A DNA stretch of 64,000 nucleotides from the NCBI RefSeq assembly GCF_032444005.1, contig NC_091288.1:12772001-12836000 (forward strand), in the 5' to 3' direction. Below are positions 7,150-62,300 of this stretch, one piece after another. The notes beneath the pieces are model-generated. The model was not told where the DNA came from, made no database searches, and worked only from the letters and a program-made list of their open reading frames with translations. The stretch is from Ranitomeya imitator (Eukaryota). The stretch's first letter is position 1. The number at the start of each line of letters is the position of its first letter. The position numbers and the translations under genes are program-made.

Positions 7150-7620
7150 CCGGTGGCCATTTTGTTGTACGGTGGAAATAAAGTTTTCCTTTCAGTAAAA
7201 ATATAATGAGAAACTGTCATTTGTGTCCGCCATGGTGGAAGTATCGATGATACAATACTTTTCTGTCACGATAGATGCAGTTTTGGTTTTTTCTTCGCAC
7301 AGACGCCATGTTGTTGTACGGCGGAAGTGTGAGCGGGAGGCGCCATATTGCCTGACTGCCTCGCAGGACGGGAAGCCGAGAGTCTGGGCGGGGAGCGGCC
7401 GCCTGTCACTGACGGACACCGAGAAGCAGCTTCATCCTTCCGTGAGGTGAATCCCCCCGCAGCCAGGAGCCGCCATGATCCTGCTGGAGGTGAACAACCG
7501 CATCATCGAGGACACCCTGAGCCTCAAGTTCGAGAACTCCGCGGCCGGGTGAGTGCGGGGGAGGAGGGCGGCGGCCGGTGGGACCGGGTGCTACTGTAAC
7601 AACCCCCCAGCGGTGACAGG
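7150..7620 (+). promoter_or_regulatory. CpG-rich TATA-less housekeeping promoter of ARPC2
   Basis: CpG-dense; ETS/GABP-type GCGGAAGT 7321-7328; YY1-type GCCATNTT at 7156-7163, 7305-7312, 7342-7349; no TATA box seen. TSS not determinable from sequence. Confidence 0.7.
7475..7548 (+). CDS. ARPC2: ARPC2 coding exon 1 ([25 protein letters not shown])
   Basis: GCCGCCATG Kozak context; donor GG|GTGAGT. Confidence 0.97.
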
Positions 7621-12209: not shown

Positions 12210-12243
<34 letters not shown>

Positions 12244-22969: not shown

Positions 22970-23061
22970 TTATTTAATGGTGTCTTCAGATGACGCAGAC
23001 ACTACTTTTCCGTCCACGATCTCGTGCTGGGTCACAGTCACCTTCTGTATAGTGCTTGGTG
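22970..23061 (-). CDS. Type I keratin exon 8 ([30 protein letters not shown])
   Basis: Pyrimidine tract + CAG acceptor; K18-like IVDGKVVS tail motif; TAA at 22972-22970. Confidence 0.88.
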
Positions 23062-24757
23062 CTGTGGGGGAGACACAGAATTAATCACAGTAAGCTTTTC
23101 AATTAGTGAATATAATGTAAAATTCCACTGATCTGGGAATCTTCTCACAGCTGAGGGTTTGTTACAGTTGTATTCTGGGAGCTACACCATGCAGACTTTA
23201 GCCTGATACATTGTAACACTCCGGAAAGGAGAGACTCTTCTGATGTGTTCAGCTCAGAGTATTGGCCTGGTTTGATACAATTGTTAGAAACCATCAGCTG
23301 TAACAATGTTCTAGTCATTGGCAGCAAGCATGTGTTTTAAAATGGTAACAATATACAAGCCCTGATTCATCACTGCGTATTTTTTCTGGCATAACCATGG
23401 TTTTAACAGTGACTTTATTTGATCATTGTTTAATTTGCACATTTAAGTTATCTTTACTTGGTTTTGACTTTTTCACTATTTTGTCTGCGGTTTTCATTAT
23501 AGAGATATTTTGGTGTAATTCATTTATCACTGCAAAATCTCTACCCATCTTTGTGCAGTGGTGCTCCAGTAGTGGAGTGCAAAATCTTTTGCACAGTTAA
23601 ACTAAAGTGTCGCTTTCTGCGCTAATAAGGTAAGATCCAAAATTATGAATTGGAAGCCCAAGAGGGTAAATTTGTTGTGCAACTGGTCCGAGACGGTTAA
23701 CTTGTCCACTGCAGGTAAAAATCTACGTCAGACACCTAAGTGTAAAATCATAGAAGTTGCAGATTGTTGCTCTCAACAGACAAGTTCAAAAATGTGCTCG
23801 ACCTTAAAATTGTTCTTTATTTCAATCTTTTATCCTAACTTTTGGGGTAAAGTCATAAACGATGCTAAAATGTTGCAAACTTTGCTGATGCACATTGGCA
23901 AACCATTTTTGCAATTGAATCAGATGAAAACATTTGCAAATCCTATCAGCAATGAAAAGAAAAAGGAAACCTTAAAATATAAAATAGAAGTTAAGAAAGA
24001 GTGCAAGTTAAAAAAACAAACACCAAAAACTAGACAATAAAAGGTGTTAGTGCGATAATGATTTGGGTACAAAATGTTTAAAGATCGATCTCCATATATA
24101 AAAAGTTTTCAGTTCTCCATCATCTAAAGGAGGAATGGGGGCATTCACATGTACATATCTATGGGGGCTATATATGCAGTGACCATAGAGGATCATCCCA
24201 TATTCTTTACTAGCCAGACCAAAAATCAATATAATTTAATTTAAAAACCATTCAGATGTGAATAGCAGCTAATAAGCAATTGCAATGTAAGCAATTTCCT
24301 TACATGCAGTATATATTAGGCTAGGGTTATATAGCGGGATTGTTCCTTTGCTGATGTCACTATTACGGCTCATACCCACTTGCGAGAAAAGAAAAAAAAA
24401 AAGGTCCGTAATCTGGACCGAAAAAATTGGATGCAAACTATGCAATTGTCATGCGAGTTCAATGCGATTTTTAATCGCACCATCCGTATGACATCTGTAT
24501 GCAATGCGGTTTTTTTTCTCTGCAACTATTTTTGTACAATCATTTACAGGACCATTTACAGTGTTCTGTGCCACAGAATGGTAATGTCTCTGTAAAAAAG
24601 GGACGGAAAATGGATGGTCCGTATTCCGCACTGATTGACTTGAATTGGCGAGACTCGCAGCATGCTGCAATTTTTTTTTTCTCAGTCCGATTTCAGCTGA
24701 GAAAAAAATAGCAAATGAGATGCCACCTATTGAATAACATTGGTCAGAGTGCAATCC

Positions 24758-24792
<35 letters not shown>

Positions 24793-27700
24793 CGGATTGC
24801 ACTCGTCCGTTTTTCTCGCAAGTGGGTATGAGCCCTAAGTCTCACAATAGGAGAAAATTAGGGGAGCGAATCCAGGAGAAAATATTTTAAGGATGGGATC
24901 ATTGTGCAGCAATTATCAGCCCCATCGGCTACTTGTTCTTACTAATTCTGTGATTTTTTTTTTTATAATCCTTTCATAAGTTCAGATTTTCCTTTTCTTA
25001 CCTAATATTCACTTACCGCCTTTTGCTGGAGACTCTGGACCGTTCCTGAAACGCAAAATCTGAATATTAGTTTAAATAATATATATTCCAAGACATCTAC
25101 TATGTAATTGTCTAAGGATCACTTCCGTCTTTCTGTCTGTCACGGATATTCATTGGTCGCGGCCTCTGTCTGTCATGGAAATCCAAGTTGCTGATTGGTC
25201 TCGCCAGCTGCCTGTCATGGCTGCCGCGACCAATCAGCGACGGCCACAGTCCGATTAGTCCCTCCCTACTCCCTTGCAGTCAGTGACCGGCGCCAGCTCT
25301 ATACTCTCCGCAGTCAGCGCCTACTCCATACTCCCCACAGTCAGTGCTCACACAGGGTTAATGCCAGCGGTAACGGACCGCGTTATGCCGCGGGTAACTC
25401 CGTTACCTCCACTATTAACCCTGTGTGACCAAGTTTTTACGATTGATGCCGCCTATGCAGAGATGCATTGCGAAATTACCCAGAAGACTTAGTGGTCTCG
25501 CGAGACCACTTAGTGATCTGGGTAATTTCGCAATGCATCCTGAGAACGCAAGATGGCGGCAGCCGCGCGCGCATTGCCAGAGGTTTGCTGGATTTACGCT
25601 GGATCCCGCCAGTGGGTGAGTATATATAACTGTTTATTTTAATTATTTTTTTTAACAGGGATATGGTGCCCACACTGCTAAATACTACGTGGGCAGTGTT
25701 AGATACTGCGTGGCTGCTATATACTACGTGGCCACTTAGATACTATGTGGGCTGTGTTATATACTACGTGGGCTGTGTTATATACTATGTGGGCTGTGCT
25801 ATATATTACGTGGCCAGTGTTACATACTACGTGGGCTGTGTTATATACTGCGTGGCTGCTATATACAGTGTGAGCTGTGTTATATACTACGTGGGCTGTG
25901 TTATATACTGCGTGGCTGCTATATACAGTGTGGGCTGTGTTATTTACTGCGTGGCCTATATTAACGCATTGGGTATTCTACAATATGTATGTATATAGCA
26001 GCCATATGGTATATACCACAGGCCACATAGTACTCCTATATACTACGTGGCCTGTGCTATGTACTATGTGGCTGCTATATACATACCTACATACATATTC
26101 TAGAATACCCGATGCATTAGAATTGGGCCACCATCTAGTACCTTAAATAAAAGCCCCTAATCGATCTCCCCCATAGATAAAAATGTAATTGGGACCAACA
26201 TGTTGCGGATTTTAGCATTTGATTTGCGCAGATAAAATCCGGCATGCAATAAGATTCCTGCATGTGGATTAGATTTTCGCTCGGCGTGTGAATTTATGTT
26301 GCAGATTTTATTCCTTTTAACTTAAGCAATGGATAAATCTGCGGAGAATGCGCACGGTACTTGTGGGAAGTTTATGGCCTATTTTGCTAGAGATCTGCTG
26401 TGTATAATAATTATATAATTTCGGTATTTTTAATAATATCTAAAGTGAGAGCAGAGTCATCTTTCTGAGCTCTGCTTGCGGCTGTTACTTGTCTGTGGCT
26501 CCTTCCAGCAGGGTGCGGTAGGCGTGGATCTCATTCTCCAGCTTGGATTTTAGGTTCAGGAGCGCGTCGTAGTCCCTGACTTGCCGCTCGATGTCAGAAC
26601 GACAGGCGGCCAGCTCGTCCTGGAGGCGCGTCAGGAGGCGATTCAGCTCCGTCAGGTTGGATCCGTAGTGATTCTCTGTGTCCTTCAAGACGTGATCTAA
26701 AGAGTCCACCTGGGAATGAAGCAAAATGAAGGGGAGTCATGGGGCAGACGGCATCCTGTAAACCAAAATGGCGCAATTTGTATGTGAATTTTATGCCAAA
26801 GCGACAAGTAACAACACTTAAACATTTTCCACTCTCTTCAGTGCATCCTAAATCCCACACTCGAGGGTCCTCCTCACCGTTTTTTGGAGGGTCTGACGTT
26901 CCATCTCTAAAGCCTGTAGCTGGCGCCGGAGGTCGGCCGCCTCTGTCTTGGCTTGGTCCAGCGCCTTTGTGTTCGCGCTTGTCTCCTTGGAAAGGGAATC
27001 AAACTGCGGCAAAGAAGAAGAACTTTAAGGCCATGTTCACATGTTGCATTTTTTGCTGCCTTTTTATGCCAATTTTAAGCCGTTTTACAGTACCAGAAAA
27101 AGCAATGAAAGTTCAGGAATCAAATGCACAAATATTGATTTCTTTTCCTTCATGATTTGGAAAAACTGCTGCGTTTTTGCAAACTGCAGCTTGTCGTCAC
27201 TTCTTTAAGCGTTTTTGAAGCATTTTTTCACCCATAAAAAGTAATGGGTAAGTGCAAAAAACGCAGCAAAAAAATGCAGGTATCAGGGTTTGCAATGAAA
27301 AAGAAAAAATAATCTTCAGCATGGATCTTCTAAAAAGTCAATTTATTGAAAACACTTTAAAATGCAAACATTTGCAAAAAAAAAAAAAGAAAGGATGGGG
27401 GTCCCAGGTGGTCAACGCCGACGCGTTTCGACCATCAGGTCTTAGTCATGGCATGATAATGGAACCACATATTAACATTTTATACAACACAGAACCAGGT
27501 TCTGGACTACGCCCTTGACCAAGGCGGCTCCGTGCATGGACATCATTGCACTGTTGAGGGATTGGTGAGCTGACTTATTTTCTTCCCATTTTTTTCCTTT
27601 TTCCCTATTTTGGTATCAGGGTTTGGCGCAAGGAAGTTGCATCATGATTTTCTTTGGGGAGGAACTAAACTACATCAGCATGCACAAGAGACAACAAAAA

Positions 27701-30700
27701 GCAGCAAAACCTGTTTTTTGTGAGCAGTTTCTTTATTGGCAAGAGAGCAGTAAAGAAAAAAAACGCAACGTGTGAACATAGCCTAATTGTAAACTCATCG
27801 TCCAGTTATATCCTGATGAGAGCGAAGTTCCAGAAACCACAGAGGGAGTAACTGGGGCTTCATCGCCCTGCGGAGACCCTGGATCACACCCTCCAGTCTA
27901 ATCTGCAGCTACAAAGTCCTCATTTGATAAAGGAGCAAAACTGATACACTGTATTATGCCAATTGCTATTTTCTCTGTGCCTCTCCCCTTCTTTTTTAGC
28001 CTGGAGTGCTTAGACAGCAGAATAACACGACAACATAATCACAACATAATGGTTCATAAAGTGGAACCTCAAATTGAGGGTATGTGCACACCTCCGGATT
28101 TTTAGCGTTTTTTTTTTTTGCGGAATTTAGCCATAAAAACGCTATAAATCTGCTAAAAAAAGCTAACATTATGCATCCTATCATTTATAATGCATTCCGC
28201 ATTTTTTGTGCATATGTTAGCGTTTTTTTCCGCAAAAAAAACTCATACCGCAAAAAATCCGGACATGCTCTATCTTTTTGCGGATTTTCTGCGGATTTCC
28301 TATCAAAATGGACATTCCGGAAAAATCCGCAAAAAATCCGCGCAAAAAAAGCGTCAAACGCGCAAATTTCGCAAGAAATCCGCGCAAAAAAAGCACGCGG
28401 ATTTCTGGCAGAATTCTCTGGATTTTGTCAGGAAAAAATCCTGACGTGTGCACATACCCTAAAAGGGCTGATAATACTCTTTTAAACTCTGGGATTTTGG
28501 CACCCAATTTGCAGAAGGTTCACTTAACTGTGTGGCCAAACAAAATTACTAGAAGCCCCTCTCTTCCAGATATGAGTGGTCCCAGCACTTAGGCCGCCAC
28601 ATATGTCTCAAAAATGTGGCATCAGGAGATAATTAAAAGTGAGCTACCCCATTAAGAATAATACATTATTTAATATTATACTACATTGTTACAATGACTC
28701 CATTTGTGCGTTATAGATATATACTGGGCAAATTTGATTTGACTTGTATTTTTTGCTCTTGCCTTGTTCTGATAAGCGTTCTCCGCATCTGCCCGGTTCT
28801 GCTCGGCCATTTTCTCATACTGGCTGCGGATTTGAGCGATGCTTTCGTTCAGGTCTGGTTTTTTTGGTGCGTCCACTTCAACCCTTACATCATTAGTGGC
28901 TATGAGCGCCTGCATGGCCGCCACTTCCTGTAAAATAGAAAAGGAAGATACGATCACTAGATGGCGGAACTAATATCCGTGTCTAATAAATGAAAGCTGC
29001 ACTCGGAAGCGCTATAATATGTAAACACTGAATATATGAGACTGGAACTGCATCACTGCTGTAGAAAACCTGCATCATAGAGCTTGATGCTGCCTGTCCT
29101 TATCACTGTAGGCTTACAGCCCGGGAGAGGCATCATGTTAGGTTTAGGGTCCCAACAAAGAGGTACACCTTGACGCTGTTGTTGGGCACAAATAAATTGG
29201 CCAATTTGTGCACTAAGCACCTTCATTATTTAACATGCTTTCTACAGCAATAATGCGATTTCATATATTCAATGTTTACATATAACATTTCAGAGCGCAG
29301 CTGCAATTTGTTATATAGAGCGGCTCTTCGCTCGCTCCTGTTCAATCTTGTCTTTTTCTGTTTGTCAGCAAAATGGTGACAGATTTCATACGTCAACCAG
29401 CAGAATTCTGAATGCAGCTTTGGATGTGATTGGAGTGTAAGAGAAGATGTACAATGTACATGATGAAGCCGAGTGTTTACAAAGTTACTCAACTTCTGTA
29501 TGTAATCTGTGAGCAGAAAGCCCCACACTGCTACATAATGTCAGATGAAAGAAAACCAAACATACAGAATATACAGGGCCGATCCCGGATGAGGAGCGCA
29601 CCCGCTAGATAAATATGACAACTCTGTACACAGAAGGGGAGGATTTCTCATCAAGTGACATTACTGAACTGAGATAAATAATAATGAGGAGACAGAATCA
29701 GATAAGTATTATATTTGTAATATATTGTACCTAGGAGCAGTATTATAGTAGTTATATTCTTGTACATAGGAGCAGTATTATAGTAGTTATATTCTTGTAC
29801 ATAGGAGCAGTATTATAGTAGTTATATTCTTGTACATAGGAGCAGTATTATAGTAGTTATATTCTCGTACATAGGAGCAGTATTATAGTAGTTATATTCT
29901 CGTACATAATAGCAGTATTATAGTAGTTATATTCTTGTACATAGGGGCAGTATTATAGTAGTTATATTCTCGTACATAGGAGCAGTATTATAGTAGTTAT
30001 ATTCTTGTACATAGGAGCAGTATTATAGTAGTTATATTCTTGTACATAGGAGCAGTATTATAGTAGTTATATTCTTGTATATAGAGGCAGTATTATAGTA
30101 GTTATATTCTTGTACATAGGAGCAGTATTATAGTAGTTATATTGTACATAGGGGGCAGTATTATAGTAGTTATATTCTTGTACATAGGGGCAGTATTATA
30201 GTAGTTATATTCTTGTACATAGGAGCAGTATTATAGTAGTTATATTGTACATAGGGGGCAGTATTATAGTAGTTATATTCTTGTACATAGGGGCAGTATT
30301 ATAGTAGTTACATTCTTGTACATAGGGGCAGTATTATAGTAGTTATATTCTTGTACATAGGGGGCAGTATTATCGTAGTTATATTCTTGTATATAGGAGC
30401 AGTATTATAGTAGTTATACTCTTGTACATAGTAGTATTATAGTAGTTATATTCTTGTACATAGGGCAGTATTATAGTAGTTATATTCTTGTACATAGGGG
30501 CAGTATTATAGTAGTTATATTCTTGTACATAGGGGCAGTATTATAGTAGTTATATTCTTGTACATAGGGGGCAGTATTATAGTAGTTATATTCTTGTACA
30601 TAGGAGCAGTATTATAGTAGTTATATTGTACATAGGAGCAGTATTATAGTAGTTATATTCTTGTACATAGGGGCAGTATTATAGTAGTTATATTCTTGTA

Positions 30701-33700
30701 CATAGGGGCAGTATTATAGTAGTTATATTCTTGTACATAGGGGCAGTATTATAGTAGTTATATTCTTGTACATAGGGGGCAGTATTATAGTAGTTATATT
30801 CTTGTACATAGGAGCAGTATTATAGTAGTTATATTGTACATAGGGGCAGTATTATAGTAGTTATACTCTTGTACATAGGGGCAGTATTATAGTAGTTATA
30901 TTCTTGTACATAGGGGCAGTATTATAGTAGTTATATTCTTGTACATAGGAGCAGTATTATAGTAGTTATATTGTACATAGGGGGCAGTATTATAGTAGTT
31001 ATATTCTTGTACATAGGGGGCAGTATTATAGTAGTTATATTCTTGTACATAGGGGAGCAGTATTATAGCAGTTGTATTCTTATACGTAGGCTATCTACAG
31101 CATGCACTCACCTCCTTGTGATCCCTATGTAGATGAGCCAGCTCTTCTCTCAGATTCTCTACCTCAGACTCGAGTTTCATCCTCAGGAAGTTGGTGTCAT
31201 CTATCATCTTGCGCAGTCCCTGGGTGTCCTTGTGCACCCCATCACAGATGACCTGTTCTGCTTCCAGCCTGCAGACACCATTATTAATAACAGTGCGTTG
31301 TGGTCACACATATTACATTTCATGTATAAATGTCATGTTTCTGTTAGTTGAGGAACTTCATAGCATAGAGTCTTTATTGCTGGGGACCCTGCACCAACTA
31401 ATATGTAACAGAAGGTGAGAACACGTCTCCTGAAATACTTTGTGCTGCTGAGCGTAGTGCAAACGATTAGAAACAGGAGGAGTTTTACGTCTTGTTTGAT
31501 GACGATTATTTCTTAGACTTCATATGAAGATGTCACATTTCCGGTCTCTGACGTGAACTCGAAGTGTAGTAGAGATGAGTGAACTTGTTCGGAAATCTTT
31601 CGCCAACATCAAAGTCGGCACGAACGTTACTCATTCAGATTCATGTTCGGATTCCCGAGTAGAGATGAGCGAATTTGCTCAAGTTCCCTCTTATTCGGCA
31701 AGCTATAACCCTTGCCGAATAAGCTGCGGAGGAAACCCGGCTTCCTGGACTGCGCCGGCCGATCAGCTTATCGGCGCCGCAGCTGCATGTGTCGTGGCTG
31801 TGTCACAGTCGCAGCACATGCATGGAGAACCGTTTTTTACATTATTTAATTAAAAAAAAAAACTGCAAGGGGACCCCTCTATTCTTGATAACCAGCCTTG
31901 CCAAAGCTGACAGCTAAGGGTTGCAGCTGTTAGTTTTGCCTGGCTGGTTATTAAAAATATAGAGGAGCCCACTCCATACTCCCATCAGCCGCCGCCTGCC
32001 CTCACTGTTATTAGTGACAGCAGGCATAGGCTGATGGCGTCAGGTGATGGGAATACTACTCCCAGTGACTGGAGGTAAACCTTTTACTCTGATCACAGCT
32101 GCAGGCTCATGTTGTCATCTGACAGCATGGGATACTTAGCTCTGACCAGCGGTAATGATTTTACCACCGATCAGAGTCAGTGTTTGTCGCGCTGTCATGC
32201 ACACTGAATGTTCGGGCCCGCATTCAATTAAATGGGATTCGGGTACCCGAACCAAACTTTTTGTGAACTGGTCGAATTCCTCGAACCCGAATATCCAGAG
32301 GTTCGCTCATCTCTACCTAGGACATTAGCAGTTACTCACTTAACTTTGAAGTCGTCCGCTGCCAGCCTGGCATTGTCAATTTGCAGCAGGAGTTTGGCGT
32401 TGTCCATATTCAGATCTTCCACCTTCAAGAAGAACCCAGAAAGTGAAAATTGAAGGAAGTGATCCTTATTAGATCTGCTATAAAATCCTGATGATTGGGC
32501 TCTGATATCTGGCGATCCCCCTTCCTATGTGGTGATATCTTTACTCCTAAATGGTGGCATCACATGGGCACTGTGTAGAGCGATTGTTGCATTGTTTGGG
32601 TACTGTATACGTGATATTATTGCACTTTTTTTTTTCTCTTTAGTGTTTTACTGATATTGAGAGTATGGGGTGTTTTTACTTTAGCACCATATGGCATGGT
32701 GTTGCGAGTAGGGTATGGTCGTATTTTGGAGCTCCAGGAGGGTATTGCTTGAATGCCATATGCATTGTTTAGTAGTATTATTTAAGCAAACGTATTTGGA
32801 ACAATATTTTCTGTGGGCACGATGTAGTTATCTGGACTATGACAGTATTGTTTGGGCTCTGTATCACGCTATTTGTGACTTTTATGGCAATATTATTTTC
32901 TCACTATATAGCAGTATTAATTGTGTATGTCAGTGTCATTTGGGTTCTATAGGGTGCTGTAATGCGCTATTATAGGAACCCTGTATGGTGGTATTAATGT
33001 GTAACTAGTATTTGTACAATATATGGTAAGATCATTTATACCGTATATCATGACATTATTTGAGCCCTGTTTGGTGGTATTAATGCACAGTATGTGGTAA
33101 TATTATTTGGGCACTGTTTAGATGTATTAATACATTATATTACTAGTGTTTCCACAATATCTGGTGCTATTACTTATTCTGTATGTCGTTACATAATTTT
33201 GGCACTGTATGGCGGTATTAATGCACTGTATTAGTATTTGCATAGTGTATGGTGATATTTTGGGGGATGGTGGATGAACCACAGACGGATGCTCATATCA
33301 CGCTGGTATTTTGCATTTTCTTCTGCTATCAGAGTACAGACAACTGCACATTGTGAGCGCACGGAGCACAATGCCGGTAATGTCTGACAGCGGGCAGAAC
33401 CAGGGATAACTGTGCACAGCAGAAGAGCAGGACGAGATCTGATAGGATCCATCAGTGCAAACCCACAGACAAGAGGATGGTGGTTGTGATCATTGCACCG
33501 ATCCCTATTATGTATCATGATCTGTTCCTGCATTTACAGAAACCAATTATCTCTGGGAAAGTAACTTATTAGACACAGTTTGGACCATGAGGTGACACCG
33601 AGGAGGACCCTGGGCAAGGACCTCATAAGGGCAGTCTGATAGCCCCTCATAATGCACAATTCCACCTGCTTTGGAGACCGACGTGGCCCCCTGACCTCTA

Positions 33701-34304
33701 GGGCCCCTGTGCGGCTGCAGAAGTTGCATCCTGATCACTGATCTCCCACGATTGTACACAACTGGGGAAGCTGCAGTCACATTTGTGTTCTGCGCCTCGG
33801 GGCATCAGGAGGGCACTATGGTCCATGTGATTACACCGCTGATACATGGCGCTCACGGACACCGTGGGCATTGGCTGGTATTTGCCACCATTTGACTGTC
33901 TCCCCCTAATTTTCATGGGGTCTCACCTGCTTTCGCAGCTGTTGCAGAGGTGCCTGGCGAGTCTCCCAGTCTCGAGGCGCCGGGTTCTTCCTGGCAGAGA
34001 TGTCCTCAATCTCATCTTGCAGTTTTCGGTTTTCTTCCTCCAGACCCCGGACGCGTTGGAGGTAACCGGCGAGACGTTCGTTCAGCTCCTGCATCACCTC
34101 TTGATGGTTGTTCTGCAGCAAAGTGTCCAACCCGGAGCGAAGCGAAGGAAGCGAAGACTCCATGGCCGACTTCATTGATTGGAGATCCAAGCCAGAACGC
34201 AATGACTGCAACCTGGAGGGCGACATCCTGAAATCCCCCGACCCCATCTGGCTTGAGGAGCTGCTGCGCCAACTTGGGGCTCCGGAAGACATTTGGAAAG
34301 ACAT
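22970..34304 (-). CDS. Type I keratin, K18-like, complete 8-exon CDS, 416 aa
   Basis: Exons (minus) 34304-33927, 32422-32340, 31268-31112, 28927-28763, 27003-26878, 26709-26489, 25045-25017, 23061-22970; sum 1251 nt, no frameshift. Rod motifs [51 protein letters not shown]; tail TIQKV...IVDGKVVS. Exon sizes 83/157/165/126/221 fit the type I keratin pattern; DDTN, VEVDAPK and the 165-nt exon 4 are K18-like. Confidence 0.93.
24363..24838. mobile_element. PIF/Harbinger-type MITE
   Basis: TTA-CGGCTCATACCCACTTGCGAG...CTCGCAAGTGGGTATGAGCCC-TAA. Confidence 0.8.
25017..25045 (-). CDS. Type I keratin exon 7, 29-nt micro-exon ([10 protein letters not shown])
   Basis: TTTCAG acceptor and GTAAGT donor; 29 nt is the phase-2 to phase-1 bridge needed to put exon 8 in frame. 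Confidence 0.8.
25096..26138 (+). mobile_element. Non-autonomous Helitron, both ends intact
   Basis: Inserted in A|T; 5' TCTACTAT; 3' subterminal hairpin CCCGATGCATTAGAATTGGG followed by CTAG; internal short TATACTACGTGG repeats. Confidence 0.8.
26489..26709 (-). CDS. Type I keratin exon 6 (coil 2 end, ...[20 protein letters not shown])
   Basis: 221 nt, CAG acceptor, donor AA|GTAACA. Confidence 0.93.
26878..27003 (-). CDS. Type I keratin exon 5 ([19 protein letters not shown]...TLQKT)
   Basis: 126 nt, CAG/GTGAGG boundaries, heptad pattern. Confidence 0.92.
27026..27786. mobile_element. PIF/Harbinger-type MITE with nested Penelope-like fragment
   Basis: TAA-GGCCATGTTCACATGTTGC...GCAACGTGTGAACATAGCC-TAA (TAA TSD); unrelated insert ~27380-27600 holds a hammerhead-like motif. 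Confidence 0.75.
28075..28462. mobile_element. PIF/Harbinger-type MITE
   Basis: TGA-GGGTATGTGCACAC...GTGTGCACATACCC-TAA. Confidence 0.8.
28763..28927 (-). CDS. Type I keratin exon 4 (EVAAMQ...[11 protein letters not shown]...AYQNK), GC donor
   Basis: 165 nt; acceptor TACAG; donor AAG|GCAAGA (GC-AG intron). Confidence 0.9.
29723..31086. repeat. 35-bp minisatellite, ~39 copies, type I keratin intron 3
   Basis: Reverse complement of the 14477-15600 unit (AGTATTATAGTAGTTATATTCTTGTACATAGGGGC). Confidence 0.98.
31112..31268 (-). CDS. Type I keratin exon 3 ([26 protein letters not shown]...RDHKE)
   Basis: 157 nt, CAG/GTGAGT boundaries. Confidence 0.94.
31570..32315. mobile_element. Non-autonomous DNA transposon (hAT-like termini)
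   Basis: TAGAGATGAGTGAAC...GTTCGCTCATCTCTA inverted termini; a second left terminus at 31660; no clear TSD. Confidence 0.55.
32340..32422 (-). CDS. Type I keratin exon 2 ([28 protein letters not shown])
   Basis: 83 nt, AG/GTGAGT boundaries. Confidence 0.95.
32560..33260. repeat. Degenerate AT-rich tandem repeat, type I keratin intron 1
   Basis: Recurring TATTATTTGGGCACTGTATGGTGGTATTAAT-like units; reverse-complement relative of 45800-46620. Confidence 0.6.
33927..34304 (-). CDS. Type I keratin exon 1 (head + coil 1A)
   Basis: ATG at 34304; MSFQMSSG...[26 protein letters not shown]...LRKQ; donor GTGAGA. Confidence 0.93.
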
Positions 34305-34736
34305 GAAGGAGATAGGACGTAGGAAATAAATGGAGTGGTTAAGTTAGGGTCCTCCTGAGGGGTTCAGGTGCTCAGTGATGGTGTCGTGAGCCTTGGGGGG
34401 CTGCAGAAGGAGCAGAGCTGGGGTTGTATGGAGACTCTGTGCAGGACTGATCACAGGTGAGGCAGGTGAGCGCATATACCAGGATGTGCAGTAATATTAA
34501 TGAGGGGGAGGCGCAGACCGTGCAACACAACTCCCCGTGTGCTGGAATCTGTAGCTTCACATTGGTGCAGGGCGACCGGCCACGTAACCCGTCTGTCCCC
34601 ATTTCCTAAACTTTCACCCCCTGGTATCTAGAATGTTTGTAAATTCTGCGTCAAGTTTTCTTCTTTTGATTTTTTTTTTTTTTTTTTTATACTCCCAAGT
34701 CGTGTTTAAGGAACAATGGAAAGATCTTCCATCCTA

Positions 34737-34966
34737 TTAACCCATTACTTTCCAAATTAGAAATTTTCATTTTACGGATTTTTCAGAAAAGGGCGTCCCA
34801 ATATTCAATTCAAAATGACAATGACATGATTTCCTATTTTGAAAACATTCATTTTACAAACATAACACAAAAAATTGGACCTAATCAAAAAAATTATAAA
34901 ATCTTAGTTGCTAGAAGCAAAAGATTAGGCGTCCCGAAAAAAGGACATTGGTAGATAATGGGTTAA
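34737..34966. mobile_element. piggyBac-type MITE in the inter-keratin promoter region
   Basis: TTAA-CCCATTA...TAATGGG-TTAA, 230 bp. Confidence 0.7.
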
Positions 34967-35424
34967 GAGGGTCATCATGGTAGAAAATAAACCAAGGGTC
35001 TATATAGCCCTCAGGAGCTGCTGGATGTGTATGATGGGTCAGATTTTGCCATCGTCCTTCCCTTTACTCCTGGAGGTGATTTCCTGATTTTCTTTTTTCC
35101 TTTTCCATTTTTTATTTTATTTCTTCTTTTTCCTTCTCCTTCCCACTTCATTTAATTTTTGCACATTTGTTAGATGGAATATATGTGAGTGTTTTTCCAG
35201 ATCTCCAAACAGACATAATAAAAGGGGACATTGAAACATTCAGTAACTTCGGCGACTGCGGAGGGGAACTACAAGTTACAGCCTGACCAGACTTGACTGT
35301 CTTTCTTTAATAGTCTATTTTGGAAATTGCTTTTATATATCCACCCCTTATCATGTATCAACTCCAACATTGAGGATCGGCCAAGAGTTTTGATAAAAAG
35401 GAGCACATTTTTTTATATGTCAAC

Positions 35425-35462
35425 TTTAATAATAATAATAATAATAATAATAATTATAATAC
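35425..35462. repeat. (AAT)n microsatellite
   Basis: Direct read. Confidence 0.9.
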
Positions 35463-36075
35463 TTTTTTATTTGAGCAAATTGCACCCAAATATATTAAAA
35501 AGGAGCATCCATTTTTCTTTTATCCATTTTTTTTTTCATGTGGCGACTGTTCTGAATTAAGAAATTGAAATCTAAAAGTTTTTTGACTAATCCTTGTTCA
35601 GTAAACCGTGCTCACTATTCCAGCCATTTGCACAATTTACAACTTTTTTACAACTTTAATTTTTGTGCAATTTGCAACATTTGAGGCTTAATTTTTTACA
35701 AATCTATTTAATAAATATGGGACAAAGTGTTCCTCAGACCCTATAATATATTATTACCGTGGGACCACCTTTCTTGTAGGAAGCGATAGGTGGTGGTTCC
35801 AGTGTCCATGTGCTAGTTATTGGTGGTCTCCGTTCACCGTGGGTCACAGTGGCGGGGAATGGAGGGAGCATTTGCTGATTAGGTGGTGACATCTAGGGAA
35901 GGGTGTGGATTGGAGCCACGATCCGCCCTGATCTCTGGAAGAGGAAGGTTCATTCTAATAATGTGTCAATAAACCAGAAGGAAAAACCAGCAGGTCCCAT
36001 GTGATGCTGCTTAGTGTTATTTCCACTCTTCGCTGCCTGCACCAAGTCCGCCATTTCTCCCGACCACAGGGCACC

Positions 36076-36363
36076 ATGAGTCAATACAACAACCGCTATG
36101 GCGCCACCCGGGGGTTCAGCAGTAGATCCCACGGCTCGCTGTCAGGGCGCCCCGCCATATTCCGGGCAAGCACCGGCTACCAGCCTGGAATGCAGCGAAC
36201 CATCAGTGGCCTGAACCTCTCCCGGGTTACACCGGGGTCCAGCACTTTCCTGCTCTCTTCTCTCCCCACCCTGGAGGTGGACCCCAAACTGCACCAGATG
36301 AGGAACGAGGAGAAGGAGCAGATCAAGGGGCTCAACAATCAGTTCGTCAACTTCATAGACAAG
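36076..36363 (+). CDS. Type II keratin exon 1 (head + start of coil 1A)
   Basis: GCACCATG; MSQYNNRYG...[18 protein letters not shown]; donor GTAAAG. Confidence 0.93.
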
Positions 36364-48300: not shown

Positions 48301-51300
48301 CGAGTATACAGGACCCCCTGTTATACGGTGGCCCCCCGAGTATACAGGACCCCCTGTAATACGGTGGCCCCCAAGTATATAGGACCCCCTGTTATACGGT
48401 GGCCCCCAAGTATATAGGACCCCCTGTTATACGGTGGCTCCCCGAGTATACAGGACCCCTTGTTATATGGTGGCTCCCCGAGTATACAGGACCCCCTGTT
48501 ATGTGGTGGCTCCCCGAGTATACAGGACCCCCTGTTATGTGGTGGTTCCCCGAGTATACAGGACCCCTTGTTATACGGTGGTCCCTGAGTATACAGGACC
48601 CCCTGTTATATGGTGGCCTCCCAAGTATACAGGACCCCTGTAATACGGTGGCCCCCAAGTATATAGGACCCCCTGTTATCTGTCAGCTCATGTTCTCATG
48701 ACTCCGTCCACAGATTGATGATTTGGTGAATCAGGGTAAGCGGGCGAGTGATGAGCTGAAGACTCTGAAGAACGAGATGGCGGATCTCCACCGGATGATA
48801 CAACGTGTCAACAGCGACAATGAGGCCCTAAAGAATCAGGTACGGGGGTCCGGAGTCTGCCCGATCTCTCAGATCCCCAAGGAGCCACCTCTTCTGTGCT
48901 GGACACAAGGTGGCACACAGACAGTGCCAGCGATGGTGCCCACAACACCAAACACATGGTGCCCCCACAACCGCCCCGACAATGGCCCAAAAAGGACGGT
49001 CTCCGCATGTGGTGGGTGCTCAGCCCCTTATATACAATCTAATATACGATAATAGCTGCTGTTAAAGGTGGCAGTGAACGTCTAGGTGGCACCTGGGGGT
49101 ACAGGGATCCGCCGTATCACTATGCCATTATAGAGCTCACCAGGGACCACCATTGCCTCCAGCTGTGTGTACAGCTGCCATACTGACACCAACAGCCGTG
49201 GAGCGGTGTAGATTGGTGAAGTCGCAGAATCTCCGAGTATCTGGACAGACAGACCTGGGCGTCCTCTCTACTGCCCCCTATAGGCGGTGGCTCACAATGC
49301 TCCATTGCTGTATATTGTCGTGCAGTGGACCCACAATCTGCCCAGTTCCATGGAGTCGTCCCTCCCATAGGTGACAAATATAGATAACTACACGGTATAA
49401 ATGAAGCCCCCGAGGGATGAAGCTTCTGCCCGAGGCTTCAGATCCATTTTTCAACCCATTTCCTTCATTTGTAGAGGACCAGTCTGGAGAACAACATCAC
49501 CCACACAGAGGAGAATGGGGAACAAGCGATCCAGAGCGCCAAGGGCCACGCGCAGGACCTGGAGGACGCCCTGAGGAGAGCGAAGCAGGATATGGCGCGC
49601 AAAGCGAAGGAATACCAGGACCTGATGAACACAAAGCTGGCGCTGGACATTGAGATCGCAACGTACCGGAAACTGCTGGAGGGCGAAGAGACCCGGTGAG
49701 TGCAAAGGATGCATTTATGGACATTGAGCTGAATTACATCCTGTGTTATACCCCAGAGCTGCACTCACTATTCTGCTGGTGCAGTCACTGTGTACATACA
49801 TTGCATTACTGATCCTGAGTTACATCATGTATTATACCCCAGAGCTGCACTCACTATTCTGCTGGTGCAATCACTTTATACATACATTACATTACTGATC
49901 CTGAGTTACATCCTGTATTATACCCCAGAGCTGCACTCACTATTCTGCTGGTGCAATCACTTTATACATACATTACATTACTGATCCTGAGTTACATCAT
50001 GTATTATACCCCAGAGCTGCACTCACTATTCTGCTGGTGCAGTCACTGTGTACATACATTACATTACTGATCCTGAGTTACATCCTGTATTATACCCCAG
50101 AGCTGCACTCACTATTCTGCTGGTGCAGTCACTGTGTACATACATTACATTACTGATCTTGAGTTACATCCTGTATTATACCCCAGAGCTGCACTCACTA
50201 TTCTGCTGGTGCAGTCACTGTGTACATACATTACATTACTGATCTTGAGTTACATCCTGTATTATACTCCAGAGCTGCACTCACTATTCTGCTGGTGCAG
50301 TCACTGTGTACATACATTACATTACTGATCCTGAGTTACATCCTGTATTATACTCCAGAGCTGCACCCACTATTCTGCTGGTGGAGTCACTGTGTACATA
50401 TATTACATTACTGATCCTGAGTTACATCCTGTATTATACTCCAGAGCTGCACTCACTATTCTGCTGGTGCAGTCACTGTGTACATACATTACATTACTGA
50501 TCCTGAGTTACATCCTGTATTATACTCCAGAGCTGCACCCACTATTCTGCTGGTGCAGTCACTGTGTACATACATTACATTACTGATCCTGAGTTACATC
50601 CTGTATTATACTCCAGAGCTGCACTCAGTATTCTGCTGGTTGTTAGTGGAATCAGTCTCCCTCCCATTAGTGCAGCTAAGCTCCTATCATGCGGGGGGCA
50701 CTTACTTTTCTTTGGTGTGACAATGTTGTTTCTATTTAGGTTGAACAATCATCCCTCGAATTCTCAGATCTCTGCAGTGGATAAATTGGGTGAGTGTTTT
50801 CTCAGTGTTTTTTCCTCGGTATTTCAGTGCTGGGATTATCTGTGGGTTTTATGATGGGTGAGGTCTGGCTGCTGATTGCAGACCCCAGTAACAAAAATAT
50901 GAGAGCTCTAAGTGGTTACTCTGGCACTCATGCATCTATTCCCATCATGTGCGATACTCTCTGCTCAGCTGTGTATCTAATCCTCTCCTGTGTGATACTG
51001 TCTGCTGAGCTGTGTATCTAATCCCCTTCTGTGTGATACCGTCTGCTGAGCCGTGTATCTAATCCTATCCTGTGTGATACTGTCTGCTGAGCCGTGTATC
51101 TAATCCTATCCTGTGTGATACTGTCTGCTGAGCCGTGTATCTAATCCTCTCCTGTGTGATACTGACTGCTGAGCTGTGTATCTAATCCTATACTGTGTGA
51201 TACTGTCTGCTGAGCCGTGTATCTAATCCTCTCCTGTGTGATACTGACTGCTGAGCCGTGTATCTAATCCTATCCTGTGTGATACTGACTGCTGAGCCGT

Positions 51301-53292
51301 GTATCTAATCCTATCCTGTGTGATACTGTCTGCTGAGCCATGTATCTAATCCTATCCTGTGTGATACTGTCTGCTGAGCTGTGTATCTAATCCTATCCTG
51401 TGTGATACTGTCTGCTGAGCCGTGTATCTAATCCTATCCTGTGTGATACTGTCTGCTGAGCCGTGTATCTAATCCCCTTCTGTGTGATACTGTCTGCTGA
51501 GCCGTGTATCTAATCCTATCCTGTGTGATACTGTCTGCTGAGCCGTGTATCTAATCCTATCCTGTGTGATACTGTCTGCTGAGCCGTGTATCTAATCCTC
51601 TTCTGTGTGATACTGTCTGCTGAGCCGTGTATCTAATCCCCTTCTGTGTGATACTGTCTGCTGAGCCGTGTATCTAATCCTATCCTGTGTGATACTGTCT
51701 GCTGAGCCGTGTACCTAATCCTATCCTGTGTGATACTGTCTGCTGAGCCGTGTATCTAATCCCCTTCTGTGTGATACTGTCTGCTGAGCCGTGTATCTAA
51801 TCTCTTTCTGTGTGATACTGACTGCTGAGCTGTGTATCTAATCCTATCCTGTGTGATACTGTCTGCTGAGCTGTGTATCTAATCCCTTCCTGTGTGATAC
51901 TGACTGCTGAGCTGTGTATCTAATCCTATCCTGTGTGATACTGACTGCTGAGCTGTGTATCTAATCCTATCCTGTGTGATACTGACTGCTGAGCCGTGTA
52001 TCTAATCCTATCCTGTGTGATACTGTCTGCTGAGCCGCGTATCTAATCCCTTCCTGTGTGATACTGACTGCTGAGCTGTGTATCTAATCCTATCCTGTGT
52101 GATACTGACTGCTGAGCTGTGTATCTAATCCTATCCTGTGTGATACTGACTGCTGAGCCGTGTATCTAATCCTATCCTGTGTGATACTGTCTGCTGAGCC
52201 GCGTATCTAATCCCTTCCTGTGTGATACTGACTGCTGAGCTGTGTATCTAATCCCTTCCTGTGTGATACTGACTGCTGAGCCGCGTATCTAATCCCTTCC
52301 TGTGTGATACTGACTGCTGAGCTGTGTATCTAATCCTATCCTGTGTGATGCTGTCTGCTGAGCTGTGTATCTAATCCCTTCCTGTGTGATACTGACTGCT
52401 GAGCTGTGTATCTAATCCTATCCTGTGTGATACTGACTGCTGAGCTGTGTATCTAATCCTATCCTGTGTGATACTGACTGCTGAGCCGTGTATCTAATCC
52501 TATCCTGTGTGATACTGTCTGCTGAGCCGCGTATCTAATCCCTTCCTGTGTGATACTGACTGCTGAGCTGTGTATCTAATCCTATCCTGTGTGATACTGA
52601 CTGCTGAGCTGTGTATCTAATCCTATCCTGTGTGATACTGACTGCTGAGCCGTGTATCTAATCCTATCCTGTGTGATACTGTCTGCTGAGCCGCGTATCT
52701 AATCCCTTCCTGTGTGATACTGACTGCTGAGCTGTGTATCTAATCCCTTCCTGTGTGATACTGACTGCTGAGCCGCGTATCTAATCCCTTCCTGTGTGAT
52801 ACTGACTGCTGAGCTGTGTATCTAATCCCTTCCTGTGTGATACTGACTGCTGAGCCGCGTATCTAATCCCTTCCTGTGTGATACTGACTGCTGAGCTGTG
52901 TATCTAATCCCTTCCTGTGTGATACTGACTGCTGAGCTGTGTATCTAATCCCTTCCTGTGTGATACTGTCTGCTGAGCTGTGTATCTAATCCTATCCTGT
53001 GTGATACTGTCTGCTGAGCCGCGTATCTAATCCCTTCCTGTGTGATACTGTCTGCTGAGCCGCGTATCTAATCCCTTCCTGTGTGATACTGACTGCTGAG
53101 CCGCGTATCTAATCCCTTCCTGTGTGATACTAATTGTTTCTTTCTGCAGCCGGTCTCTTGAATTATGATGGGAAAACTTCTTCTTCTTTGGCACGAAATT
53201 CCCCGAACGCCAAGAAAGTTGTTCTGGTGAAGACGATTGAAACCTCCGACGGTAAACAAGTGTCGGAGGCGAATCACTATTCCCGGGAATGA
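36076..53292 (+). CDS. Type II keratin, K8-like, complete 9-exon CDS, 452 aa
   Basis: Exons 36076-36363, 45389-45597, 46873-46933, 47333-47428, 47602-47766, 48714-48839, 49475-49695, 50740-50789, 53150-53292; sum 1359 nt, all GT-AG. Motifs LEVDP...[45 protein letters not shown], tail [16 protein letters not shown] (K8-type VVKKIETRDGKLVSE). Exon sizes 209/61/96/165/126/221 fit type II keratins. Confidence 0.95.
36549..36906. mobile_element. CpG-rich PIF/Harbinger-type MITE
   Basis: TAA-GGCTGGGTTCCCATTGCG...CGCAATGTGACCCTAGCC-TAA, TAA TSD. Confidence 0.8.
37140..39045 (+). mobile_element. Old 5'-truncated CR1 LINE (decayed ORF2, intact 3' end)
   Basis: Decayed [25 protein letters not shown]; many stops/frameshifts; 3' end GGTCCCTTCCAACTCTAACATTCTAGGATTCTA with ATTCT tail repeats. 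Confidence 0.9.
38368..38586 (-). mobile_element. V-SINE-like copy nested in CR1
   Basis: Homologous to 9047-9318, internally deleted; 8-bp TSD ACATTCTA at 38360-38367 and 38587-38594. Confidence 0.85.
39560..40430 (-). mobile_element. Probable non-autonomous Penelope-like remnant with mutated hammerhead
   Basis: Hammerhead-shaped motif 40271-40311 on minus strand; downstream AATAAA at 39705-39710; boundaries approximate. Confidence 0.45.
41030..41918. mobile_element. T2/Kolobok-type MITE, ~890-bp near-perfect palindrome
   Basis: TTAA-AGGGAACCTGTCACCCC...GGGGTGACAGGTTCCCT-TTAA; mirror-image ORFs in the track confirm the symmetry. Confidence 0.92.
41990..43110 (-). mobile_element. L1-clade LINE 3' fragment (ORF2 C-terminus + 3' UTR)
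   Basis: [28 protein letters not shown] (L1 C-terminal CCHC region) and [22 protein letters not shown]; frameshifted; AATAAA near 41992-41997. Confidence 0.8.
43386..43400 (-). promoter_or_regulatory. Candidate CTCF site
   Basis: Minus strand TCCACTAGATGGTGC. Confidence 0.35.
44022..44661. mobile_element. T2/Kolobok-type palindromic MITE
   Basis: TTAA-AGAGAACCTGTCACCCCC...GGGGGTAACAGGTTCCCT-TTAA; same family as 11170-11782. Confidence 0.9.
44795..45150. repeat. Degenerate tandem repeat (~7 units of variable length)
   Basis: Recurring CTACAAGTACCAGCAATAATTGCAG..CCCCTGCAAA. Confidence 0.8.
45389..45597 (+). CDS. Type II keratin exon 2 ([14 protein letters not shown]...EELKSR)
   Basis: 209 nt, CAG/GTATGC. 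Confidence 0.94.
45633..45749. mobile_element. Short hAT-like MITE remnant
   Basis: CAGGCTCGGACTGGCCCA left end resembles 56621; right end ambiguous. Confidence 0.35.
45800..46620. repeat. Degenerate AT-rich tandem repeat, type II keratin intron 2
   Basis: Recurring AATACCACCATACAGTG / ATAATACTGCCATATAGTGC units. Confidence 0.6.
46065..46200 (+). mobile_element. 3' tail fragment of an L2/CR1-group retroelement
   Basis: GGGCAGGGTCCTC...TGTAAAGCGCCATGG...GCTATAATAATAAATAATAATAAT. Confidence 0.55.
46873..46933 (+). CDS. Type II keratin exon 3 ([20 protein letters not shown])
   Basis: 61 nt, CAG/GTGCGC. Confidence 0.95.
47333..47428 (+). CDS. Type II keratin exon 4 ([11 protein letters not shown]...KQLYKE)
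   Basis: 96 nt, CAG/GTAATG. Confidence 0.94.
47602..47766 (+). CDS. Type II keratin exon 5 (EIQELQSQ...ELDNSRDL...HWYKSK)
   Basis: 165 nt, CAG/GTGCGA. Confidence 0.94.
47828..48678. repeat. 36-bp minisatellite, ~23 copies, type II keratin intron 5
   Basis: GGCCCCCCGAGTATACAGGACCCCCTGTTATACGGT unit; 12-aa periodic ORFs. Confidence 0.97.
48714..48839 (+). CDS. Type II keratin exon 6 (IDDLVNQGK...EALKNQ)
   Basis: 126 nt, CAG/GTACGG. Confidence 0.94.
49475..49695 (+). CDS. Type II keratin exon 7 (RTSLENN...[21 protein letters not shown])
   Basis: 221 nt, TAG/GTGAGT, intact helix-termination motif. Confidence 0.96.
49727..50637. repeat. 86-bp minisatellite, ~10 copies, type II keratin intron 7
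   Basis: GAGCTGCACTCACTATTCTGCTGGTGCAGTCACTGTGTACATACATTACATTACTGATCCTGAGTTACATCCTGTATTATACCCCA unit; ORF starts recur every 86 nt. Confidence 0.97.
50740..50789 (+). CDS. Type II keratin exon 8 ([16 protein letters not shown])
   Basis: 50 nt, TAG/GTGAGT; correct phase 2 to phase 1 bridge. Confidence 0.82.
50960..53130. repeat. 41-bp minisatellite, ~53 copies, type II keratin intron 8
   Basis: TGTGTGATACTGTCTGCTGAGCCGTGTATCTAATCCTATCC unit. Confidence 0.98.
53150..53292 (+). CDS. Type II keratin exon 9 (AGLLNYDG...[23 protein letters not shown])
   Basis: TTTCTTTCTGCAG acceptor; K8-type tail motif; TGA at 53290-53292. Confidence 0.9.
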
Positions 53293-62114: not shown

Positions 62115-62300
62115 GTATAGCCGGCCCAAAATGTTTGGGCTGAAGTAGGAGGAAAAGTAGTCTGAGGAAGTTTTTTTTTTTTTTTTCTCCTCTGAGGTTG
62201 CTGCCTAGCCCTAATTGCAGTCTGGCTGATTTTTTTTTTTTTTTTTTTTTTTTCCCCCCCCCTCTTAATCCTTGAATGGCTCTGACCTTAGCTGTTTATC

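Follow-up and report, generated by a model that had tools for sequence, protein, structure and literature searches.

Gene content of the locus

The window, by which we mean the whole 64-kb stretch of Ranitomeya imitator DNA that was analysed, contains two keratin genes beside ARPC2, one of type I and the other of type II. Both keratin genes are intact, and the models built here match to the base the span of 22970-53292 that had been claimed for the pair by an earlier, sequence-only reading. The same reading had described the genes as divergent, which proved to be so: the type I gene is on the minus strand, the type II gene is on the plus strand, and their start codons face each other. The features of the locus are as follows.

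About 7475..20664, plus strand: ARPC2 coding region (ORF scan, motif search, Pfam)
22970..34304, minus strand: type I keratin gene, K18-like, 8 exons, 416 aa (hand-built model, alignment to P0001, Pfam Filament, trees)
Type I exons, minus strand: 34304-33927, 32422-32340, 31268-31112, 28927-28763, 27003-26878, 26709-26489, 25045-25017, 23061-22970
25017..25045, minus strand: type I exon 7, 29 nt
28761..28762, minus strand: GC (not GT) splice donor of type I intron 4, exon end AAG and intron start gcaaga, after 28763
34305..36075, no strand: region between the start codons, 1771 bp, presumed shared bidirectional promoter and 5' UTRs
36004..36075, plus strand: in-frame upstream ATG adding 24 residues, used by the 476-aa RefSeq model XP_069588804.1
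36076..53292, plus strand: type II keratin gene, K8-like, 9 exons, 452 aa (hand-built model, Pfam Filament, tree)
Type II exons, plus strand: 36076-36363, 45389-45597, 46873-46933, 47333-47428, 47602-47766, 48714-48839, 49475-49695, 50740-50789, 53150-53292
50740..50789, plus strand: type II exon 8, 50 nt, between two intronic tandem-repeat arrays

The first coding exon of ARPC2 starts with MILLEVNN and the last one ends with GKTFAAR and a stop codon; the Pfam family P34-Arc (PF04045) was matched by the exons at 14209-14418 and 15887-16030. ARPC2 and the type I keratin gene are convergent, with 2.3 kb between their stops. Downstream of the type II gene, from 53.3 to 64 kb, only transposon ORFs were found, and in X. 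laevis and Gopherus the first 10 kb downstream of this gene are free of called genes. A tblastn search of the 64 kb with both proteins recovered no further keratin sequence, in agreement with the earlier statement that the window holds no other keratin.

Structure of the two keratin genes

The ATG of the type I gene is at 34304 and the last base of its stop codon at 22970. Its internal exons of 83, 157, 165, 126 and 221 nt reproduce the classic type I series exactly, and Pfam Filament (PF00038) was detected on exons 1, 4 and 6 (E-values 1.8e-11, 9.5e-13 and 1.7e-17), all above the cut-off of 40 bits. The model and the R. variabilis protein share 98% identity. Splice sites are canonical in both keratin genes with the single exception of the GC donor in the type I gene, where the 165-nt exon length and the reading frame were confirmed by alignment to P0001. 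Read-through of the exon 7 donor yields a protein ending in AKGGK, the tail-less 388-aa 'isoform X2' that is annotated in many species.

The type II gene has its ATG at 36076 and the last base of its stop codon at 53292. Exon sizes of 209, 61, 96, 165, 126 and 221 nt correspond to the classic type II series, and Pfam Filament was above the cut-off on exons 5 and 7. The 50-nt exon 8 is needed because the conserved tail is otherwise out of frame; a direct splice from exon 7 to the last exon was tried and rejected, as it breaks the frame. The complete model, this exon included, agrees in 452 of 452 residues with the public R. imitator protein CAJ0945440.1 (P0284), which confirms the exon. The first intron of the gene measures ∼9 kb and holds retrotransposon ORFs.

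Solved keratin chains allowed a comparison of K5/K1 with K14/K10 (the PDB contains no K8 or K18 chain), in which the type I protein fell on the K14/K10 side (79 bits to K14 2B versus 53 bits to K5) and the type II protein on the K5/K1 side (122 bits to K5 2B versus 55 bits to K14). In the tree, with K14/K16/K19-like proteins as outgroup, the type I gene was placed inside the K18-type group and not with the cluster-1 keratins. It encodes a type I (acidic) keratin of the K18 group. The type II head was less conventional: exon 1 (96 aa) matches no Pfam family, Keratin_2_head (PF16208) included, although this domain is typical of the type II family rather than strictly defining. In precomputed Pfam lists almost all members of the K8-like clade have PF00038 but lack PF16208, a domain that is present in teleost K8. 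The gene encodes a type II (basic) keratin, with K8 proteins as its nearest named relatives.

That either gene, or both, is a pseudogene in decay and preserved by chance is very unlikely. The GC donor, the repeat-filled introns and the long first intron with its retrotransposon ORFs would fit such decay, but the reading frames run uninterrupted across 8 and 9 exons, the exon structure matches that of X. tropicalis, and expression is recorded in Xenopus. Protein identity also remains high: the closest dendrobatid proteins match at 98% and 96%, those of Xenopus at 70–71%.

The region between the start codons

The two start codons of R. imitator are 1772 bp apart, and across eight species (R. imitator and seven others) the start-to-start spacing ranges from 0.29 to 2.5 kb. 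Since this spacing is very short and conserved, it suggests co-regulation of both genes from a shared bidirectional promoter, a role that we presume for the 1771-bp region as a putative element. A search for 8-mers common to the intergenic regions of the eight species returned CAGGTGAG alone, which is uninformative and therefore offers no positive evidence for conserved promoter elements.

Orthologues and linkage to ARPC2

Homologue searches were seeded with type I exon 1 and with a 273-aa stop-free ORF of the type II gene (exon 5 and an open intron repeat; region 3-57), and the final searches with the full-length proteins. Orthologues were found in coelacanth, lungfish, sturgeon, bowfin, all three amphibian orders, turtles and squamates. 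In caecilians the two genes lie on one chromosome-sized contig, which is the sole basis of linkage in that order. No protein from birds, crocodilians or mammals was among the listed top matches for either gene; for birds and mammals, absence here refers to these top protein matches. Logan assembly contigs of public sequencing runs, about 1–1.7 kb long, carry near-full-length orthologues.

The expectation that a keratin would also lie near ARPC2 in other non-mammalian vertebrates was borne out in X. tropicalis, Anolis, the turtle Emys, skate and eel. The first four share the complete triad of type II gene, type I gene and ARPC2; in eel the type I gene adjoins ARPC2, and there is no type II gene within 10 kb. 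The X. tropicalis triad (locus L001) is at 85.21–85.24 Mb of a 91-Mb chromosome record, CM004451.2, and the published coordinates of krt8.2/krt18.3 (NC_030685.2, chr9 85.21–85.23 Mb) are within the range of this locus. Exon numbers of 8 and 9 are the same as in X. tropicalis krt18.3 and krt8.2. The window genes are orthologous to krt18.3 and krt8.2, as follows from the triad at L001 and its coordinates, from the krt8.2 cluster name and from the trees.

Phylogenetic placement

Branching within the type I clade agrees with the species tree across ray-finned fishes, coelacanth, lungfish, amniotes and amphibians (UFBoot 99 / SH-aLRT 95); including skate, whose sequence is on a long branch, support is 92/90. 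Canonical K18 proteins of Mixophyes, caecilians, Pleurodeles, Carettochelys and Latimeria form a clade separate from the ARPC2-linked type I proteins. Hagfish Krt18b was placed outside both K18 clades (97/91), although hagfish and skate are both long-branched and the K18 backbone is not resolved. The type II clade, with coelacanth, sturgeon, bowfin, lungfish, reptiles and amphibians, received 100% support; teleost K8 is its sister group, and K1b/K75 served as the outgroup. This tree does not include canonical tetrapod K8, and the separation of the clade from canonical K8 is based on teleost K8 and on the ranking of matches.

These placements bear on two simpler readings of the locus. The first, a recent frog-specific duplicate of canonical K8/K18 that diverged fast, could be invoked for the modest identity of the type I protein to canonical K18 (about 45–47%), the only observation for which an explanation is required. 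We regard it as extremely improbable. Orthologues with the same neighbours occur in reptiles, fishes and skate, the clade is species-tree-like, canonical K18 of the same species is placed elsewhere in the tree, and an AU test rejected a tree in which all frog K18 were forced into one clade (p = 1.2e-10). For the type II gene, besides the fully supported clade, fish K8-like proteins outscore any second frog K8 against the window protein. The earlier reading, which had taken the pair to be something other than a frog duplicate, was correct on this point.

The second reading equates the pair with the canonical K8/K18 locus (cluster 2), as its head-to-head orientation and its K8/K18-like tails might suggest. 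This is likewise extremely improbable: the flanking gene is ARPC2 and not EIF4B or FAIM2, no further type II keratin is present in the window, and canonical K18 forms a different clade and is on another chromosome in both Mixophyes and Carettochelys. The canonical K18 loci of these two species have no neighbour gene within 10 kb.

The pair as a known second K8/K18-type system

The pair is real but not new. Kimura & Nikaido (bioRxiv 10.1101/2020.05.06.063123; Genomics 2021) have described it as 'subcluster 4' (krt18.2-clade A2 / krt8), and have published both its deep conservation and its loss in birds and mammals; they report the pair as not found in caecilians. The R. imitator genes are the local member of this subcluster, and nothing essential differs between the two: each consists of one type I/type II pair, arranged head to head, away from both big keratin clusters, cluster 1 (SMARCE1..EIF1) and cluster 2 (FAIM2..EIF4B), with the same tree position in a K18-type clade apart from canonical K18. 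The suspicion that the genes carry generic labels was justified, since they go by K18-like, K8-like, ON3-like and krt8.2 names. NCBI's pipeline labels many type II orthologues 'intermediate filament protein ON3-like', the known proteins in question being goldfish ON3 and teleost keratin 8. Teleost proteins that bear the name ON3 or K8 group with teleost K8 in the tree and not in the ARPC2-linked clade; 'ON3-like' is a similarity label and not a statement of orthology.

With canonical KRT8/KRT18 (human 12q13, flanked by EIF4B, with FAIM2 at the cluster's far end) the pair shares the divergent type II/type I order, K8/K18-like tails (one ends EIVDGKVVS), VEVD in the type I linker and an RGFSSRS-type type II head, and both are presumably formers of simple-epithelial filaments. 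The pair differs in its chromosome, in having ARPC2 as a neighbour, in not being at the end of a type II cluster, and in the distance of 0.3–2.5 kb between the start codons of ARPC2-linked pairs. Its type II head is short and not glycine-rich, unlike the canonical counterpart, and the type I helix-termination motif reads EIH.YRTLL versus EIATYRRLL. Human KRT18 has 7 exons, compared to 8 in the R. imitator type I gene.

We consider it highly probable that the two genes are the orthologues of Xenopus krt18.3 and krt8.2, that is, subcluster 4, representing an ancient second K8/K18-type system. The pair, already beside ARPC2, predates the split of cartilaginous and bony vertebrates. It survives in skate, in non-teleost ray-finned fishes, in coelacanth and lungfish, in frogs, salamanders and caecilians, and in turtles and squamates, and is apparently lost in birds, crocodilians and mammals. 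Judging from what is known of the family, the two proteins probably form obligate type I/type II coiled-coil heterodimers, from which simple or apical epithelial cells would build 10-nm filaments, and the close spacing of the genes suggests that both may be driven from the shared bidirectional promoter. Expression is on record for the Xenopus genes: in adult skin of X. tropicalis, krt8.2 is at about 5 TPM and krt18.3 at 11–20 TPM, and Krt8.2 marks apical corneal epithelial cells of Xenopus tadpoles. In R. imitator, krt8.2 was reported as a candidate gene for hindlimb colour (bioRxiv 10.1101/2023.04.20.537757), and the authors of that study were unable to design primers around their SNP.

Origin of the pair

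Two accounts of how the pair came to lie beside ARPC2 were weighed. The one we slightly favour is that it is an ohnologue, on the HOXD paralogon and from the second-round, jawed-vertebrate duplication, of the HOXC-linked KRT8/KRT18. The ancestral locus would then have been one head-to-head pair with a short shared promoter, all keratin loci would be its descendants by whole-genome duplication, and the copy beside ARPC2 would later have been deleted in birds, crocodilians and mammals. A whole-genome-duplication origin, with a mirrored TNS1/TMBIM1 synteny, had also been put forward as a hypothesis by the earlier reading. The other account, that a K8/K18 pair reached the neighbourhood of ARPC2 through an ancient segmental duplication or translocation, we hold to be possible and distinctly less probable.

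Genomic position speaks against a segmental event. Human ARPC2 is at 2q35, on the HOXD-bearing arm, and KRT8/KRT18 are at 12q13 beside HOXC. The three keratin loci of X. tropicalis are on chromosomes 2, 10 and 9, which we take to be the carriers of hoxc, hoxb and hoxd. Both human regions belong to the 2q/7/12q/17q HOX paralogy set of the general literature (Abbasi & Grzeschik). The position of the split between the K18 clades, younger than the hagfish branch but older than the gnathostome radiation, also fits the timing of whole-genome duplication, with the long branches and the unresolved backbone qualifying this reading. In favour of a segmental event, neither the window nor the 10-kb flanks of related loci showed further paralogous neighbours, Kimura & Nikaido report that subcluster 4 shares no synteny with clusters 1 and 2, and Abbasi & Grzeschik argue that the HOX-linked families were not all duplicated together.

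Significance

The discovery value of the locus is small, as the pair already has annotations in public genomes and gene names in Xenopus, and was published in 2020–21. Small additions of the present analysis are the linkage to ARPC2 back to cartilaginous fish, the presence of the pair in caecilians, the eel locus with a type I gene only, and the proposed HOXD-paralogon origin; literature searches found no explicit statement of ARPC2–keratin linkage or of an ohnologue. Work on krt8.2 in colour and cornea benefits from the exact gene model, which includes the microexon, the upstream ATG and the repeats that fill the introns. ARPC2, a constant neighbour from skate to frog, is a simple landmark by which the locus, or what is left of it, can be located in any vertebrate genome, and this landmark makes a whole-genome-duplication origin of the keratin loci testable.

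A divergent keratin pair beside ARPC2

The window sequence is repeat-rich and contains no N. Six-frame ORF scans placed exons of ARPC2 upstream of the keratin exons, on the plus strand, the rod and tail exons of a K18-like (type I) gene on the minus strand from 34.3 to 23.0 kb, and the exons of a K8-like (type II) gene on the plus strand at 36.1-53.3 kb. Pfam matched P34-Arc on the ARPC2 exons and Filament on the larger rod exons scanned. The keratin models were built by hand using splice sites and reading phase, and the 50-nt type II exon 8 was included because the conserved tail is otherwise out of frame.

Gene features of the window
~7475-20664, plus strand: ARPC2 CDS, convergent with the type I keratin
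22970 (end of stop codon), minus strand: type I keratin, 8 exons, 416 aa
23061, minus strand: acceptor of the last type I intron, found by aligning the closest database protein
25045-25017, minus strand: 29-nt type I exon, found in the same way
28761-28762, minus strand: GC donor of the type I GC-AG intron (AAG/gcaaga)
50740-50789, plus strand: type II exon 8, 50 nt, flanked by two intronic satellite arrays
53292 (end of stop codon), plus strand: type II keratin, 9 exons, 452 aa

Junctions are GT-AG throughout both keratin models, with the exception of the single GC-AG intron, and exon lengths follow the classic type I (83/157/165/126/221) and type II (209/61/96/165/126/221) series. The type II model is identical to R. 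imitator CAJ0945440.1, and the type I model shows 98% identity to R. variabilis 'keratin, type I cytoskeletal 18-like isoform X1'. These matches assign the window to R. imitator or a species very close to it. The keratin start codons are divergent with 1772 bp between them, and the stops of ARPC2 and the type I gene lie 2.3 kb apart. The sequence-only reading had reported two intact divergent keratins at 22970-53292, adjoining ARPC2 and with no other keratin in the window. This observation is confirmed: the stop codons end exactly at these two positions, and tblastn found no further keratin sequence within the 64 kb.

In both keratins the rod is complete and carries the helix-initiation and helix-termination motifs. 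Type I retains the linker VEVD motif and the IVDGKVVS tail, and its termination motif is EIH.YRTLL (EIHDYRTLL in the Xenopus orthologue). Type II retains RGFSSRS in the head, LEVDP, the [13 protein letters not shown] end, and a tail resembling that of K8. The type II head is short, not glycine-rich, and gave no Pfam match to Keratin_2_head. Judging by the family, the two proteins would form obligate type I/II heterodimers and assemble into 10-nm filaments.

Donor read-through of the 29-nt type I exon (25011-25045, minus strand) gives a protein ending in AKGGK and a stop, a tail-less isoform from which the conserved IVDGKVVS is removed. NCBI predictions of tail-less 'isoform X2' proteins (380-390 aa) exist for numerous frogs, caecilians, and squamates; the Xenopus proteins as annotated (385 aa) likewise lack the tail. 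In the type II gene, an in-frame upstream ATG (36004-36075, plus strand) would add 24 residues and is taken by RefSeq XP_069588804.1 (476 aa); position 36076 is the start in the 452-aa ENA model and in orthologues from other frogs.

Repeats and mobile elements

One 35-bp minisatellite occurs at three sites (92-98% match) and probably represents the internal repeat array of a mobile element with dispersed copies. The GC-rich 51-bp array is open in several frames, which explains the long spurious ORFs found there. Type II exon 8 sits within a 300-bp gap separating the intron 7 and intron 8 arrays. Large intronic arrays may explain the reported difficulty of krt8.2 primer design in R. imitator (bioRxiv 10.1101/2023.04.20.537757). 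From 53.3 kb to the window end, only the LINE-type and gypsy-type ORFs were seen.

Repeats and mobile elements of the window
3324-6897: GC-rich array, 51-bp unit, ~70 copies, immediately upstream of the ARPC2 start
14479-15600: 35-bp minisatellite, 32 copies, ARPC2 intron, opposite orientation to the other two arrays
29705-31090: 35-bp minisatellite, 40 copies, type I keratin intron 3
37441-38900, plus strand: reverse-transcriptase-like fragments, 9-kb first intron of the type II keratin
47831-48679: tandem array, 36 bp x 24, type II keratin intron 5
49729-50640: tandem array, 86 bp x 10.6, type II keratin intron 7
50934-53131: tandem array, 41 bp x 54, type II keratin intron 8
56700-58800, plus strand: LINE-type reverse transcriptase ORF, 556 aa, downstream of the pair
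60842-61381: 35-bp minisatellite, 15.5 copies, downstream of the pair
62292-64000, plus strand: gypsy-type gag-pol ORF, 569 aa, continuing past the window end

Phylogeny of the two keratins

Full-length searches listed 120 matches per gene. Among these, orthologue-like proteins of both genes cover every anuran family (identity 70-96%), Xenopus (68-71%), caecilians (65-70%), salamanders (60-65%), squamates and turtles (53-64%), and lungfish, sturgeon, paddlefish, coelacanth, gar, bichir, and bowfin (47-54%). All of these groups ranked above canonical K18 (42-48%) or teleost K8. Mammalian, bird, and crocodilian orthologues were absent from the 120 matches listed for either gene.

The type I tree (a careful and a quick version) was rooted with K14/K16/K19-like keratins. 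The clade holding the window gene follows the species tree, with ray-finned fishes, coelacanth, and lungfish branching before amniotes and amphibians (UFBoot 99/SH-aLRT 95; 92/90 with a skate sequence added). Canonical K18 of coelacanth, lungfish, turtle, turkey, frog, salamander, and caecilians falls outside it, and both K18 copies are present in Mixophyes, Carettochelys, Rhinatrema, Geotrypetes, Pleurodeles, Latimeria, and Protopterus. Forcing a single frog type I clade cost 293 log-likelihood units (AU p = 1.2e-10), which together with the branching order argues against a recent frog duplicate. The type II clade (42 rows) unites coelacanth, sturgeon and bowfin, lungfish, reptiles, and amphibians with 100% support; its stem is long (0.67) and its sister is teleost K8.

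Conservation of the locus

X. tropicalis, Anolis carolinensis, the skate Leucoraja, and the turtle Emys share a triad of a type II keratin, a divergent type I keratin, and a convergent ARPC2. For the skate, tblastn identified the unannotated upstream gene as a type II keratin. The head-to-head pair is also found in sturgeon, X. laevis, and Gopherus. The eel retains the convergent arrangement of its K18-like gene and ARPC2, and the 10 kb upstream of the K18-like gene contain a gene with a TPH domain but lack any type II keratin; the type II partner has been lost or moved, consistent with teleosts missing from the type II clade. In the caecilians Rhinatrema bivittatum and Microcaecilia unicolor, the K18-like and K8-like/ON3-like genes share one chromosome-sized contig (371,528,181 and 311,292,523 bp, respectively), and caecilian genes of both types fall inside the ARPC2-linked clades. 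Canonical K18 of Mixophyes and Carettochelys is on chromosomes other than those of the K18-like/K8-like genes, so the pair is not the canonical locus.

The start-to-start distance is 0.29-2.5 kb in 8/8 species. Since this short divergent spacing has been kept for >400 million years, a shared bidirectional promoter is suggested to drive the pair. A single motif was common to the intergenic regions and was uninformative.

Origin of the pair

The sequence-only reading took the pair to be a candidate second simple-epithelial keratin system, possibly an ohnologue of KRT8/KRT18. Judged in its own terms, this interpretation is supported, with the ohnologue origin a plausible part of it. Three points, none of them a test, favour that origin. 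Human ARPC2 lies at 2q35 on the HOXD-bearing arm and KRT8/KRT18 at 12q13 beside HOXC, two regions of the classic paralogy set 2q/7/12q/17q. HOXC and HOXD group together in this set (Abbasi & Grzeschik). The type I tree has cluster-1 keratins outermost, then hagfish, then the two K18 clades. X. tropicalis chromosomes 2, 10, and 9 presumably bear hoxc, hoxb, and hoxd. The three keratin loci of this species are on the same chromosomes (Kimura & Nikaido supplementary table). A single ancient segmental duplication is a possible alternative source of the pair.

Relation to known keratin clusters

The pair is exactly what Kimura & Nikaido describe as 'subcluster 4' (bioRxiv 10.1101/2020.05.06.063123; Genomics 2021;113:1120): one head-to-head krt18 (clade A2)/krt8 set, separate from clusters 1 and 2. 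They report its conservation from sharks through X. tropicalis, its absence from what they found in caecilians, birds, and mammals, and two such pairs in lamprey. Their supplementary table places krt8.2 (GeneID 549551, 9 exons) and krt18.3 (GeneID 100493614, 8 exons) at 85.21-85.23 Mb of X. tropicalis chr9. Our X. tropicalis locus has the same coordinate range, and cluster members of its type II protein carry the name krt8.2. Krt8.2 marks the apical corneal epithelium in Xenopus tadpoles, and krt8.2 has been put forward as a candidate gene for hindlimb colour in R. imitator (bioRxiv 10.1101/2023.04.20.537757); in adult X. tropicalis skin, expression is low to moderate (krt8.2 TPM ~5, krt18.3 TPM 11-20).

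The pair is therefore already known, and the earlier inference is right but not new. To the published account we add the tail-less type I isoform produced by donor read-through, the lost or moved type II partner at the eel locus, the triad kept by turtles and squamates, the possession of both genes by caecilians, and ARPC2 as a constant neighbour back to a cartilaginous fish.
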